Shown: positions 16,701 to 22,066 of the stretch, one piece after another | Numbering within the stretch: position 1 is the first letter of the stretch | Layout: every line of letters begins with the position of its first letter | Source: Macrostomum lignano | Taxonomy: Eukaryota | Length of the DNA: 64,000 bases | Direction of reading: 5' to 3' | Assembly (NCBI GenBank): GCA_002269645.1 | Contig: NIVC01001238.1 | Coordinates: forward strand, 62,001 to 126,000 | Position numbers and translations under genes: made by a program | Notes under the pieces: generated by a model | Told to the model about the DNA's origin: nothing | Database searches by the model: none | Seen by the model: the letters and a program-made list of their open reading frames with translations, nothing else

Positions 16701-19700
16701 GTGACCGCCTTCACCAGGGACTACCTGTCCGGCGAGGGTGACGTCATCAAACACCTGGGCTACATGGGCTACCGGTTGAGCCATGCGCAGAAGCCTCTTG
16801 ACGAATATCAGTTCGGTGTCACCAACTTGGCCGTGGATTTGCGCGACGGAATTCGACTGTGCCGGACGCTGGAGATTCTGACCGGCGGCCGGACAGCCCT
16901 GTCCGGACAGGTCCGCTGCCCGGCCATAAGCCGGCTGCAGAAGATTCGCAACTGCCAGGCCGCGTTCGAGGCGCTAAAAGGCCTTGGCGTGTCGCTGGAT
17001 TGGACACCAGGTGAGAGATTCATTTGGGGCAGGTGAGATTAGATCAGATATCAAGCGGTGAGGTTAGATAAGATATCAAACAGTGAGATTAGATGAGATA
17101 TCAAGCGATGAGATTAGATGTGATATCAAGCGATGATATTAAATGAGATATCAAGTGGTGAGATTAGATCAGCTATCAGACGGTGAGATTAGATCAGATA
17201 TCAAGCGGTGAGGTTAGATAAGATATCAAACAGTGAGATTAGATGAGATATCAAGCGATGAGATTAGATGTGATATCAAGCGATGATATTAAATGAGATA
17301 TCAAGTGGTGAGATTAGATCAACTATCAGACGGTGAGATTAGATAAGATATCAAACAGTGAGATAAGATCAAATATCAAACAGTGCGATTAAATGGGATA
17401 TCAAGCGGTGAGATTAGAGGAGATATCAAGCGGTGAGATTAGAGGAGATATCAAGCGGTGAGATTAGAGGAGATATCAAGCGGTGAGATTAGATAAGATA
17501 TCAAACAGTGAGATAAGATCATATATCAAACAGTGAGATTAGAGCAGATATCAAACGGCGAGATTCGATCGGATGTCAAACAGTGAGATTAGATCAAATA
17601 TCAAACAGTGAGATTAGAGCAGATATCAAACGGTAAGACTAGATTTAAAAATATGATAAGATTAGATAATTGGAAATTTTAGATCAGAGTATGCCATAAA
17701 ATCTTCAAGTGACAAAAACATAAAAAATTTTTGCTGAGAAATGGAACAGTGAGGTCATTGGAATGTAGTTGGCAAATTCCCTCTATATCGCCGGAACTTC
17801 CCCGTGCTCCCGTTGTCAAGGCAACCCGATCGATCCTCGCGACATTGTCGACGGTCACCGGGAGAAGACGCTCAGCCTGCTGTGGCGCTGTCTGGCCCGT
17901 TTCTCCCTGGCCGAGGACCCGGGCCTCGTTGGCCGGCTTCTCTGCGAGATCCGCGCTCTTCGCCGCGCCCTCCGCACCCGGGGCGCCGCCTGCCCGCCGG
18001 CGCCGGCCGACCCGAGCCCGGCCAGCCTCCTGCCCTGCTGGGCCGCCTGCGTGGCCGCCTTCGACTGGCCGGCGGGCCGGCCGCCTCCGGCCGAGGACGA
18101 CAGTCGCGTTGTCATGCGGTTGCTAAGGCACTACGGCGCGGCACCGCCAGCTGCTGACGATAACAATGACGGCGCCGATAGTTGGCGCGCGGTGGCCGAG
18201 CGCCTGGCTGAGCTCGGACAGTGTCCGGCGTTGATCATGCCGAATTCCTCGGACAGGCCGGACCGCTGCATGCTGCTCGCCCAGCTGGCCGCCCTGGCCG
18301 GCAGCCTGCTCAACCTCAACGCCGAGTCCCGAGCCGCCAGAGTCATCCAAGCGGCCTGGCGCCGACGCTGCGCCAGCCTGGCGGGCCCGCCAGCCGCCCA
18401 GGAGGACCGGGTTGACGCTCTGCCAGCGAAAGTCGGCGCCGAGTCGGCCGTCTTTGAGTTCAACATCGGCGTGTGGCCGGGCACGCCGGGGCCGGCCAGC
18501 AAGCCAGCGGACACGCCCAGCCGCTGCCTGCTGGACGTACAGGCTATTCGGCGCGCCCAGGCTGCCAGCGCCATCCAGCGCTGGTTTCGGCGCGCGCGCC
18601 AGATTCGAATTGGCCGGATTCGGCGCGAGATTGAGCGGCGCAGACGGCGACGCGCCATTTTGGTCATCGTCACCAACTACCAGATTAGCAGGCGCAACCG
18701 GTTCTTTGCCCTACTCCAGGGTCACGTGACTCGCTGGCTGGCCAACAGGCAGGCGGCCGCCAGACGCATCCAGCAGTTCTGGCGCGCATATCGGATCAAA
18801 CGGACTGAGCTTGAGAGGCTGCGGGCGGAGCGTCTGGAACGGGAAACACTGGCGGCCTGCCAAATACAGCGGGTTTGGCGCAATTTCCGGGCAAAGCAAT
18901 TGGAGCGGCAGCGGCTTGAGCAGGAAAGAATCGAGCAGGAACGACTTGAGCAGGAGCGACTTGAGCAGGAAAGAATCGAGCAGGAACGACTTGAGCAGGA
19001 GCGACTTGAGCAGGAAAGAATTGTGCAGGAAAGAATTGAGCAGGAAAGAATTGAGCAGGAGCGACTTGAGCAGGAACGACTTGAGCAGGAGCGACTTGAG
19101 CAGCAGCGGCTTGAGCAGGAACGGCTTGAGCAGGAACGACTTGAGCAGGAGCGACTTGAGCAGCAGCGGCTTGAGCAGGAACGGCTTGAACAGGAACGAC
19201 TTGAGCAGCAGCGGCTTGAGCAGGAACGGCTTGAGCAGGAACGGCTTGAGCAGGAACGGCTTGAGCAGGAACGGCTTGAGCAGGAACGGCTTGAGCAGGA
19301 GCGACTTGAGCAGGAGCGGCTTGAGCAGGAAAGAATTGAGCAGCAGCGGTTTGAGCAGGAAAGAATTGAGCAGCGGTGGCTTGAGCAGGAACGGCTTGAG
19401 CAGGAACGGCTTGAGCAGGAACGGCTTGAGCAGGAGCGACTTGAGCAGGAGCGGCTTGAGCAGGAAAGAATTGAGCAGGAGCGGCTTGAGCAGGAGCGAC
19501 TTGAGCAGGAACGGCTTGAGCAGGAACGGCTTGAGCAGGAGCGACTTGAGCAGGAGCGGCTTGAGCAGGAAAGAATTGAGCAGCAGCGGTTTGAGCAGGA
19601 AAGAATTGAGCAGCGGTGGCTTGAGCAGGAACGGCTTGAGCAGGAACGGCTTGAGCAGGAGCGACTTGAGCAGGAGCGGCTTGAGCAGGAAAGAATTGAG

Positions 19701-22066
19701 CAGGAGCGGCTTGAGCAGGAACGGCTGGAGCAGGAACGGCTTGAGCAGGAACGGCTTGAGCAGGAACGGCTTGAGCAGGAGCGACTTGAGCAGGAGCGGC
19801 TTGAGCAGGAAAGAATTGAGCAGCAGCGGTTTGAGCAGGAAAGAATTGAGCAGCGGTGGCTTGAGCAGGAACGGCTTGAGCAGGAACGGCTTGAGCAGGA
19901 GCGACTTGAGCAGGAGCGGCTTGAGCAGGAAAGAATTGAGCAGGAGCGGCTGGAACGGCAGTCACAGGCTGCCAGCCGGATTCAACGGGCTTGGCGCAGC
20001 CTCGTTGCCAGGCGGGAGCTGCGGGATCGGCGTACCCGGGCCGCCGTCACTCTGCAGGCGGCCTTCCGTGGCTGGCGGGTCCGCGCCCGCTGCCAGGTGG
20101 CCGCCATGCCACAGCTTCGTCGCCGGATATCCGCCGCCTACGCCGACGCTCGCCGCAACCCGGAGCGGCTGCTGCTCGCCCGCGCCCGCTCGGCTCTGCG
20201 GTTTGCCCGTCAGCAGCTGCCGGCGCCGGCCGTGGCGCAGCAACTGGCGGACCTGCGGGCCGGCACCAGCCACTCAGCTAAGCTGTGCGAACTGCTGTGC
20301 AGCCAGGTGTGTTCGTTGGTTTCAATGTGTGTGCCTGTCTGTCTGTCTGTCTGTCTGTCTGTCTGTCTGTCTGTCTGCCTGTCTGTCTGTCTGTGTGTCT
20401 GTCTGTCTGTGTGTCTGTCTGTCTGTCTGTCTGTCTGTCTGTCTGTCTGTCTGTCTGTCTGTCTGTCTGTCTGTCTGTCTGTCTGTCTGTCTGTCTGTCT
20501 GTCTGTCTGTCTGTCTGTCTGTCTGTCTGTCTGTCTGTCTGTCTGCCTGTCTGTCTGTCTGTCTGTCTGTCTGTCTGTCTGTCTGTCTGTCTGTCTGTCT
20601 GTCTGTCTGTCTGTCTGTCTGTCTGTCTGTCTGTCTGTCTGTCTGTCTGTCTGCCTGTCTGTCTGTCTGTCTGTCTGTCTGTCTGTCTGTCTGTCTGTCT
20701 GTCTGCCTGTCTGTCTGTCTGTCTGTCTGTCTGTCTGTCTGTCTGTCTGTCTGTCTGTCTGTCTGTCTGTCTGTCTGCCTGTCTGTCTGTCTGTCTGTCT
20801 GTTTGACTTTCTGTCTGTCTGTCTGTCTGTCTGTCTGTCTGTGTGTCTGTCTGTCTGTCTGTCTGTCTGTCTGTCTGTCTGTCTGTCTGTCTGTCTGTCT
20901 GTCTGTCTGTCTGTCTGTCTGCCTGCCTGTCTGTCTGTCTTAGTGTCTGTCTGTCTGTCTTAGTGTCTGTCTGTCTTTCTGTCTGTCTGCCTGTCTGTCT
21001 GTCTGTCTTAGTGTCTGTCTGTCTGTCTTAGTGTCTGTCTGTCTTTCTGTCTGTCTGTCTGTCTGTCTGCCTGTCTGTCTGTGTGTGCCTGTCTGTGTGT
21101 GCCTGTCTGTCTGTCTGTCTGTCTGTCTGTCTGTCTGTCTGTCTGTCTGTCTGTCTGTCTGTCTGTCTGTCTGTCTGTCTGCCTGCCTGTCTGTCTGTCT
21201 TAGTGTCTGTCTGTCTGTCTTAGTGTCTGTCTGTCTTTCTGTCTGTCTGTCTGTCTGTCTGTCTGTCTTAGTGTCTGTCTGTCTTTCTGTCTGTCTGTCT
21301 GTCTGTGTGTCTGTCTGTCTGTCCGCCTGTCTCTCTGTCTGTCTCAGTCTATCAATCTACCAAACCCCTCCCGCCATCAACAGTCCGGCGCTGTCGCAGC
21401 CCTGTTCTCACTCATGGCAGGCTGCAACCGAAGTCTACCCCACCAGCACATTGTGCTGCACAGTGTCCAGATCCTGCACAATCTGATCCGGCACTCGGCC
21501 ACTGCGGCAAGCGTTGCCAGAGAGTGTCCGGTGAAAGCTGGCGACGTGCTGACCGACGCGCTTGTGTCCGGGGCGGTTGTCCGGCCTTCGCCGCTGCAGC
21601 AGGTGAGGCAATATTGGCATCAAGAGCTCATGAGCACATTCAAGCGCTACAATTTTTTACACAGGCACCAACTCACACGGTGTACAGCAGTCCTGACTGT
21701 CTAATCGTCAGGCAGGTGCAATTTCTGTGCCTTAAGGGTTGGGAAATTCTTGTGAACCCCCGGCCTCCGCTCCCACAGGAACTGGTGAAGGCCAGCGCCT
21801 GCCTGCTGGCCTCTCTGGTCTCCAGCGCCGCAGGCGTCAGCGGCGGATTCGCCCTGTCCCGGCGCGCTGTTGTCCGCCTGCGCGAAACCCGCGACGCGCT
21901 GCTGCGCCGGGCGGGCCTGGAGGAGCGGCGGCTGGTCAGCCAGCTGAAGGCTTCGGGCGCCCTGTTGGTCCGCGTGGAGCCGGACTGGGTGCTGAAGCGG
22001 TCAGCCAATCAGCACATGGCCAGCCCCATCACTGCGGTCTGCTACCTGTGCGAGCTGTTGCGCTGA
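13721..22066 (+). CDS. ASPM: ASPM / abnormal spindle microtubule-associated protein (~1771 aa, 7 exons)
   Basis: Exons 13721-15013, 15114-15383, 15746-16071, 16577-17010, 17821-20306, 21384-21602, 21779-22066; all GT-AG with consistent phases. Recognised parts: N-terminal ASH domain (LVDFGRV..LLIQNP..LTWTP), [35 protein letters not shown] domain ([29 protein letters not shown]), IQ motifs, and C-terminal GCNRSLPH and EPDWVLK. Confidence 0.95.
15436..15705. repeat. (TCTG)n microsatellite in ASPM intron 2
   Basis: Tetranucleotide run. Confidence 0.97.
17030..17645. repeat. 25-bp minisatellite (GAGATTAGATCAGATATCAAGCGGT)n in ASPM intron 4
   Basis: Tandem periodicity, with a ~150-bp higher-order duplication (17035-17160 versus 17185-17310). 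Confidence 0.92.
18900..19961 (+). repeat. Coding 15-bp minisatellite encoding ~70 (L/I)EQER pentapeptides in ASPM exon 5
   Basis: In frame and stop-free between two IQ motifs. The lines starting at 19321, 19561 and 19801 are identical, giving a 240-bp higher-order period. Confidence 0.9.
20335..21345. repeat. (TCTG)n microsatellite in ASPM intron 5 (~1 kb)
   Basis: Tetranucleotide run between the donor at 20307 and the acceptor at 21383. Confidence 0.97.

Follow-up and report, generated by a model that had tools for sequence, protein, structure and literature searches.

The locus considered here raises the question of whether a long tandem repeat found inside an exon of an ASPM gene is part of the encoded protein and, if so, what it might do there. 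The stretch analyzed, hereafter called the window, consists of 64,000 nucleotides of the genome of the flatworm Macrostomum lignano (assembly GCA_002269645.1, contig NIVC01001238.1, positions 62,001 to 126,000 of the forward strand). Its plus strand carries a seven-exon ASPM gene, in which a 15-bp unit repeated 71 times lies between the fourth and the fifth IQ motif (IQ4 and IQ5) and reads as (L/I)EQER. The size of ASPM is widely discussed as evolving through the number of its IQ motifs. Taken together, the data make it probable that the array is a real, transcribed and in-frame coding minisatellite of ASPM, adding to the protein a predicted spacer that resembles a single alpha-helix (SAH) and whose copy number is unstable.

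The host gene was modeled by hand, with all junctions of the GT-AG type and all phases compatible, and its product is 1771 amino acids (aa) long. An earlier sequence-only reading of the window had placed the fifth exon at 17821-20306, and these limits coincide with the acceptor (gtcaag/GC) and the donor (CAG/gtgtgt) of this coherent model. The exons have a GC content of ~70%, and the non-repeat intron sequence one of ~30-35%. The exons are listed below, L001 being the locus of a second copy of the gene that is described further on.

13721-15013, plus strand: ASPM exon 1, with the start codon, the ASH domain (aa 53-148, by Pfam) and a GT donor
15114-15383, plus strand: ASPM exon 2, with AG/GT junctions, phase 0 and a frame continuous with exon 1
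15746-16071, plus strand: ASPM exon 3, with a counterpart of equal length in L001
16577-17010, plus strand: ASPM exon 4, with the first part of the CH domain (from the junctions and the Pfam CH match on the spliced protein)
17821-20306, plus strand: ASPM exon 5, a single open frame throughout, with the end of the CH domain, IQ1-IQ4, the pentad array and IQ5-IQ6
21384-21602, plus strand: ASPM exon 6, part of the C-terminal region, identical in L001
21779-22066, plus strand: ASPM exon 7, terminating with the stop codon of the hand-built model

Judged by its domains, the gene is an ASPM ortholog, as the sequence-only reading had held, because the ASH, CH and IQ families of Pfam all score above their cut-offs and because the best named matches are ASPM proteins. 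In the spliced protein, which was searched in an array-collapsed version, ASH (PF15780) was found at aa 53-148 (E=1.1e-20, 74.1 bits against a cut-off of 27) and CH (PF00307) with 28.5 bits against a cut-off of 26. The IQ family reached 21-25.5 bits against a cut-off of 20.3 (21 bits on the spliced protein). The CH region matches fish and human proteins named ASPM (E=1e-68 to 1e-74), and a gastropod protein, with 40-46% identity, the values for mollusc and human ASPM being 45-46%. No Pfam model matched exons 6-7, which may resemble the vertebrate ASPM C-terminus (SGAV…CNRS.P…, PDWVL.R). Six clear IQ motifs fitting the regular expression [ILV]Qxx[WF]R occur in the model protein and are predicted to bind calmodulin. 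Four stand before the array (Ile at aa 950, 1026, 1091 and 1123) and two after it (Ile at aa 1495 and 1519); all five of the IQ-like strings quoted earlier were recovered, together with a sixth clear motif and one degenerate stretch.

The part of exon 5 that surrounds and includes the array is composed as follows.

18333-18896, plus strand: IQ1-IQ4 region and one degenerate IQ-like stretch (regular expression, Pfam IQ)
18900-19964, plus strand: coding minisatellite of 71 units of 15 bp, consensus CTTGAGCAGGAACGG, translated as LEQER (Tandem Repeats Finder, frame-phased reading)
19335-19949, plus strand: higher-order repeat of 240 bp (16 units) in ~2.6 copies (self-identity by shift)
19968-20084, plus strand: IQ5 and IQ6 (regular expression), IQ6 at aa 1513-1532 being the best Pfam IQ match

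By Tandem Repeats Finder, the repeat has a period of 15 and extends over 18912-19951, in 69.3 copies with 84% matches and 0% indels. When read in the frame of the exon, the array amounts to 71 perfectly phased pentads, or 1065 bp and 355 aa, between IQ4 and IQ5, in good agreement with the first estimates of ~1.06 kb, ~350 aa and ~70 units. The 69 internal units comprise 49 LEQER, 7 IEQER, 3 LEQQR, 3 IEQQR, 3 FEQER, 3 IEQRW and 1 IVQER. The end units are degenerate (LERQR first, LERQS last), and both blend into the native linker. Self-identity of the array rises to 0.96 at a shift of 240 bp, compared with ~0.83 at other shifts, and every copy of this higher-order repeat opens with Phe/Trp-containing units. 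The GC content of the array (0.57) is below that of the adjoining exon sequence, and Pfam holds no family for the repeat by itself.

The array is found a second time in the same species. An exhaustive search of 1.84 billion representative proteins, using the segment from IQ3 to IQ6 with the array included as query, gave one outstanding match (P0167, E=1e-155), the alignment of which reaches the non-repetitive IQ5/IQ6 flank. This protein is PAA74894.1 (BOX15_Mlig031656g2) of Macrostomum lignano, from the Mlig_3_7 assembly, publicly labeled only as 'hypothetical protein' or 'CH domain-containing', and its flanking sequence is 99.2-99.7% identical to that of the window protein. A word-indexed protein search did not return PAA74894.1 despite the 99% identity, and blanks from that search were not read as absence; it gave no match for the part of exon 5 that precedes the repeat, and matches of at most 46% identity over most of the query for the CH region. 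The locus of PAA74894.1, L001 (GCA_002269645.1, contig NIVC01000916.1), aligns collinearly with the window (92-97% nucleotide identity) and has the same seven exons and splice sites as the window gene. Across 4251 nt of non-repeat coding sequence, the two copies differ by 31 synonymous and 11 nonsynonymous substitutions, and the ratio of nonsynonymous to synonymous rates (dN/dS) is near 0.1 by rough site counts. Relative to L001, the window could represent another haplotype, another duplicated-chromosome copy, or another line or assembly.

Copy number differs widely between these sources. The array counts 71 units in the window, 52 in the L001 genomic sequence (L001:9887-10666, open and in frame) and 42 in the PAA74894.1 gene model, which fits the idea that its length varies as in a variable number of tandem repeats (VNTR) locus. 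Compared by unit type, the arrays of the window and of the L001 genomic sequence have their seven 3'-terminal units in common, with similar 5' ends and rearranged interiors. The bulk of the window array's extra length is the 240-bp higher-order repeat, and its diagnostic Phe/Trp units are absent from L001, so this expansion postdates the split of the two copies. PAA74894.1 thus agrees with the window gene in exon structure, array position and 3'-terminal units, but has fewer units, lacks the Phe/Trp higher-order repeat and is N-terminally truncated. The truncation goes back to exon 1 of L001, where one C is missing from a CCCC run (L001:~5990, window equivalent 14823); because of the resulting frameshift, PAA74894.1 starts at an internal Met, without the ASH domain. 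The missing base reflects either an indel error of long-read sequencing or a duplicate that is truly decaying. A further deletion in this exon, of 6 bp and in frame, is located at window-equivalent 14455-14460. An assembly artefact as the source of the array was rejected, since the array recurs in a second independent locus and in an RNA-based model; exact copy number is exempt from this conclusion.

That the array is in frame and free of stops is weak evidence of coding, because the unit is open in two of its three forward frames and, being 15 bp long, can be repeated without any change of frame. Stronger evidence is provided by a synonymous bias, by the second gene copy and by transcript-based annotation. 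Relative to the consensus, variation among the window units is synonymous to nonsynonymous at 54:30 in the ASPM frame, vs 3:89 and 0:92 when the units are read in the remaining two, and the corresponding figures for L001 are 48:23, compared with 2:75 and 4:74. The three commonest unit variants are all synonymous (GAA/GAG, CGG/CGA and CGG/AGA), the fourth and fifth replace Leu by Ile and Glu by Gln, and radical changes (to Pro, Gly, Val, Lys or Trp) are rare, with 1-3 units each. The excess of synonymous changes and the scarcity of radical ones indicate some constraint at the peptide level. RNA sequencing (RNA-seq) underlies the GenBank annotation of Mlig_3_7, which used StringTie/TACO, BLAT-mapped de novo transcripts and TransDecoder (PMC5730564), and the RNA-seq-based PAA74894.1 model keeps the array with its 42 units. 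It is presumed from these data that the array is translated.

A cryptic intron ('exitron') by which the array would be wholly or partly spliced out, leaving a main protein without it, is very unlikely. The PAA74894.1 model is 10 pentads (150 bp) short of the 52 units in its own locus, which might be taken for splicing, with a gap that falls within L001:10292-10531. However, this L001 stretch contains no GT dinucleotide, and the single GT of the L001 array is located in its last unit; the 150-bp gap is therefore not a canonical GT-AG intron. It is most likely a collapsed short-read transcript annotated as a false intron. In the window, one frame-preserving pair, GT(18726)...AG(20057), could in principle excise the array, and the low GC content of the array relative to its surroundings would fit an intron. 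The donors of the real ASPM exons score 6-8 of 9 consensus positions, with G at +5 in 6/6 and at -1 in 5/6. The GT at 18726, the best one upstream of the array, scores 7/9 but has no G at -1 or +5, and its use would remove IQ3-IQ5. No credible intron emerged from a scan for splice sites in and around the array, whose AG sites lack a pyrimidine tract, in keeping with the earlier statement that no convincing donor/acceptor pair surrounds it.

If the array is translated, its likely conformation can be considered from structure predictions, made here with AlphaFold2 from single sequences. IQ4 followed by 24 units was predicted as one uninterrupted helix (residues 2-139, mean predicted local distance difference test score (pLDDT) 96.5). 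A 523-aa segment, from part of the IQ2-IQ3 linker to IQ6, was predicted as all-helical with one break, located at the first Phe/Trp-containing units (mean pLDDT 76). Leu or Ile at every fifth residue describes a spiral round such a helix, without a hydrophobic seam (resultant vector of Leu, Ile, Phe, Val and Trp 0.017-0.045 at periods of 3.5-3.75 residues). Charged residues make up 55-60% of the array, which has a net charge of -58, and every pentad contains a Glu(i)-Arg(i+3) pair and an Arg(i)-Glu(i+4) pair. The flanking IQ segments are basic (+6 to +12 per 40 aa). An SAH-like conformation is a reasonable prediction on this basis. Of the charged single helix proposed in the sequence-only reading, the exonic position and the predicted helicity have stood, and assignment of the array to the SAH class is of no more than moderate confidence given its net charge and a crude salt-bridge score of 0.23, compared with 0.54 for LERER and 1.18 for E4K4. 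At 0.15 nm per residue, 71, 52 and 42 units would span ~53, 39 and 32 nm if fully helical, and by arithmetic 355 aa correspond to the helix length of ~15 IQ motifs.

Dimerization of ASPM through the array as a coiled coil is highly improbable. Coiled-coil predictors often flag such sequences, and the 523-aa AlphaFold2 model folds back into two helices; however, this explanation was rejected on hydrophobic periodicity, as no seam is present (resultant 0.02-0.045 at periods 3.5 to 3.75), and self-association would be disfavored by the strongly negative net charge.

Charged helices next to IQ motifs are known from other proteins. The lever of myosin X consists of three IQ motifs and an SAH, a charged helix that continues from the IQ neck and measures ~10 nm in the crystal structure (PMC5025751), and in the mitotic protein INCENP an SAH binds microtubules (PMC4571873). 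Like the myosin X helix, the array is predicted to continue IQ motifs directly and without a hydrophobic seam, and like INCENP its host is a mitotic microtubule-associated protein. In contrast to SAH or ER/K helices, the array is made of perfect pentads with Leu/Ile at every fifth residue, no Lys and one Arg per two Glu, and the predicted helix is far longer than known SAHs. The likeness to the myosin lever is purely architectural, since the Macrostomum protein has ASH, CH and IQ domains and no myosin motor. A further relative in form is the LERER repeat of Mena (ENAH), with 13 copies in mouse and 15 in human, which binds the alpha5 integrin tail (PMC3514034). Both repeats follow a five-residue L-E-x-E-R pattern of variable copy number, which in Mena varies between species. 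Unlike the Mena repeat, the array has an LEQER consensus, 71 units and an unrelated host, and the role of the Mena repeat is binding to an integrin tail and not spacing; only one LERER unit was found, in the L001 copy.

By analogy with these proteins, the array might form, instead of a passive spacer, a multivalent binding surface for basic ligands, microtubules or ASPM's own Arg-rich IQ regions. The direct ligand binding of the Mena repeat and the microtubule binding of the INCENP helix would agree with this, as would the strongly acidic array between strongly basic flanks. Analogy is, however, its sole basis; an acidic helix would repel the acidic tails of tubulin, and the fast turnover of units speaks against a precise binding register. 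A binding role of this kind is distinctly unlikely.

Several points weigh against reading the array as a translated, SAH-like spacer. The synonymous bias is real but built on few independent mutational events; when distinct variant states are counted, 8/19 are synonymous, compared with 22% expected (p ~0.04). The transcript support is second-hand, and the public model differs from its own genome by 10 units. The 1-bp deletion in L001 means that at least one copy may be decaying, or else reflects an assembly error, and the exact copy numbers of such arrays in long-read assemblies may be wrong. As for the structure, single-sequence AlphaFold2 makes nearly any E/R/Q/L-rich repeat helical and cannot separate a single helix from disorder or self-association; the 523-aa model folds back on itself at residues 237-253. 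Furthermore, with a net charge of -58 and one Arg per pentad, the salt-bridge network would be weaker than that of classical ER/K helices.

The origin of the array can be traced in part from its codons. Leu is encoded by CTT in 51/54 cases in the array, compared with 14/156 in the rest of the gene, and the GC content of third codon positions is 0.61, compared with 0.80 elsewhere in the gene. Because of this codon usage and of the 240-bp higher-order repeat, the array looks young, as if one founder unit had been amplified recently and had not yet acquired the codon usage typical of the gene. The native linker upstream of the array is already rich in E, R and L, so the seed was ordinary inter-IQ sequence. 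Without the 69 internal units, the spacing between IQ4 and IQ5 would be 27 aa, and without one more, 22 aa, which resembles the 24-35 aa between the other IQ motifs of this protein. The array arose in a mutational background rich in tandem repeats, which make up 28.5% of the window; simple and tandem repeats together are reported to account for 15% of the M. lignano genome (PMC5730564), and this background explains why the array arose here.

Other repeats occur within the gene itself. Introns 2-5 of ASPM each carry their own micro- or minisatellite, namely (TCTG)66 at 15437-15701, a 22-bp unit at 16255-16407, a 25-bp unit in 24.5 copies with a 150-bp higher order at 17032-17644, and (CTGT)251 at 20335-21344. 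These intronic arrays also differ in length between the two copies of the gene; intron 4 measures 810 bp in the window vs 460 bp in L001, and intron 5 measures 1077 vs 1353 bp.

From these data, a mechanism can be proposed. A 15-bp piece of the linker between adjacent IQ motifs would have been amplified, likely by replication slippage or unequal exchange, in a genome rich in tandem repeats. Only in-frame variants that preserve composition would have spread, and the protein would thereby have gained ~355 residues of (L/I)EQER. This segment is predicted to carry on from the IQ helix in a single long alpha-helix, strongly acidic and without a hydrophobic seam, and such a helix would separate the part containing ASH, CH and IQ1-4 from the part containing IQ5-6 and the C-terminus. 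The helical, SAH-like conformation and the role as a spacer are inferred, as is any effect on the spindle.

The data are explained about equally well by a functional spacer and by a product of slippage that is tolerated. The array may well be a functionally neutral passenger in a flexible ASPM linker, in a genome that is prone to tandem repeats and recently duplicated. Its length would then be without meaning for the spindle, and selection would do no more than remove stops, frameshifts and residues that are sticky or break the helix; this is a serious possibility, although not the one we would favor. It would fit the share of tandem repeats in the window, the arrays in introns 2-5 and their differing lengths in the two gene copies. 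The apparent youth of the array points in the same direction, and so does the apparent tolerance of 71, 52 and 42 units. In addition, the DV1 line of M. lignano has duplicated chromosomes (PMC5730564), which could relax constraint. The synonymous bias and the few radical changes argue for some peptide constraint and hence against pure neutrality, but they would also fit a requirement simply to do no harm.

The sequence-only reading had gone further, and supposed that the long IQ-calmodulin rod of ASPM was rebuilt in this lineage as a calmodulin-independent charged helix; in its fullest form, an adaptive VNTR would set the length of ASPM and the architecture of the spindle. This is unlikely. 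The number of IQ motifs was reported as 2 in ASPM of C. elegans, 24 in fly, 61 in mouse and 74 in human (PMC374243), and a later review gives 60 in mouse and 81 in human (PMC10047693). The six motifs of Macrostomum lie inside the known invertebrate range, from C. elegans to fly, and their small number is therefore not unusual, contrary to what had been thought. There is no sign of IQ loss, and the six motifs persist on both sides of an array that is recent and arose out of the linker at a normal junction between two IQ motifs, as the collapsed spacing of 22-27 aa indicates. The very different lengths in two near-identical copies also argue against a tuned length. A replacement of the rod would be compatible with a predicted helix that is continuous from IQ4 and as long as some 15 IQ motifs, with the variable copy number, and with the single lever of myosin X, in which three IQ motifs are joined to an SAH (PMC5025751).

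Compared with the ASPM/Asp/ASPM-1 family, the Macrostomum protein has its ASH, CH and IQ regions in the usual order, but differs by the ~355 aa of minisatellite-encoded (L/I)EQER between IQ4 and IQ5. Such pentads were found in 0/46 retrieved ASPM-like fragments, most of which stop short of the IQ region, and no paper in the library searched named Macrostomum together with ASPM. An array of this kind inside an ASPM appears to be previously undescribed. The pentad class itself, with LEQER, LEAER and LEKER repeats, is common, as 1017 representative proteins matched the IQ3-IQ6 query at E<=1e-10. Some unrelated representative proteins combine IQ motifs with charged tandem repeats: in P0192, two IQ motifs lead directly into (LEQERIEKER / LEQERIAAEK)n, and in P0173 a (AEKAEAERIA)n repeat comes after many IQ motifs. 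Unlike the Macrostomum ASPM, neither has ASH or CH domains, and their repeats come after the IQ block and not inside it. These proteins suggest that an IQ neck joined to a charged repeat helix has evolved several times outside myosins.

The rest of the window holds further genes and repeats. The downstream neighbor of ASPM is a coiled-coil gene on the minus strand (25673-26446; L001:17339-19046, also minus), with synteny kept, and its L001 counterpart has an Ax_dynein_light (PF10211) match in the assembly annotation. A second, unrelated 15-bp minisatellite, TGGAGTAGAGTGGGT, is present at 27257-29746 with 167 copies and 95% matches, and on each strand several of its frames are open. This repeat, which is assumed to be non-coding, adjoins or falls inside a minus-strand gene matching the axonemal dynein light chain gene of L001. 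Farther on, two exons of a gene for a 3-ketoacyl-CoA thiolase (ACAA2-like) occupy 49951-50634 and 51336-51956 of the plus strand (Thiolase_N E=1e-61, Thiolase_C E=4e-47), and the intron between them holds a 21-bp minisatellite (50655-51269). GC-rich exons are found at 58184-58954 and 62151-62831, both on the plus strand; one of the two gave a weak BRCT-type match (RTT107_BRCT_5, 23 bits, below cut-off), and one a match to the CCM2 C-terminal (harmonin-homology) domain (E=1e-10). An Id-like helix-loop-helix gene guessed by eye at 4070-4606 on the minus strand was dropped, as it had no Pfam support.

Altogether, a genome rich in tandem repeats appears to leak repeats into its coding exons, and public gene models of such exons are unreliable, as seen from the 42 units in the model and the 52 in its own genome. 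Here, the neck region of ASPM would have been lengthened by a route other than IQ-motif number, through a minisatellite that codes for a charged helix. Should the array prove to be both translated and helical, it would provide an extreme test case (~350 aa) for the length of a single charged helix, and natural length variants in an animal in which transgenesis has been reported (PMC5730564). It is also conceivable, if doubtful, that the length of the helical neck of ASPM is a heritable and fast-mutating VNTR trait that alters the architecture of the spindle pole or the autoregulation of ASPM. In that case, the acidic (LEQER)n helix would serve to extend the IQ rod without calmodulin. If this were true, the arrays of Macrostomum lignano would offer a natural allelic series for testing the effect of protein length at the spindle pole.

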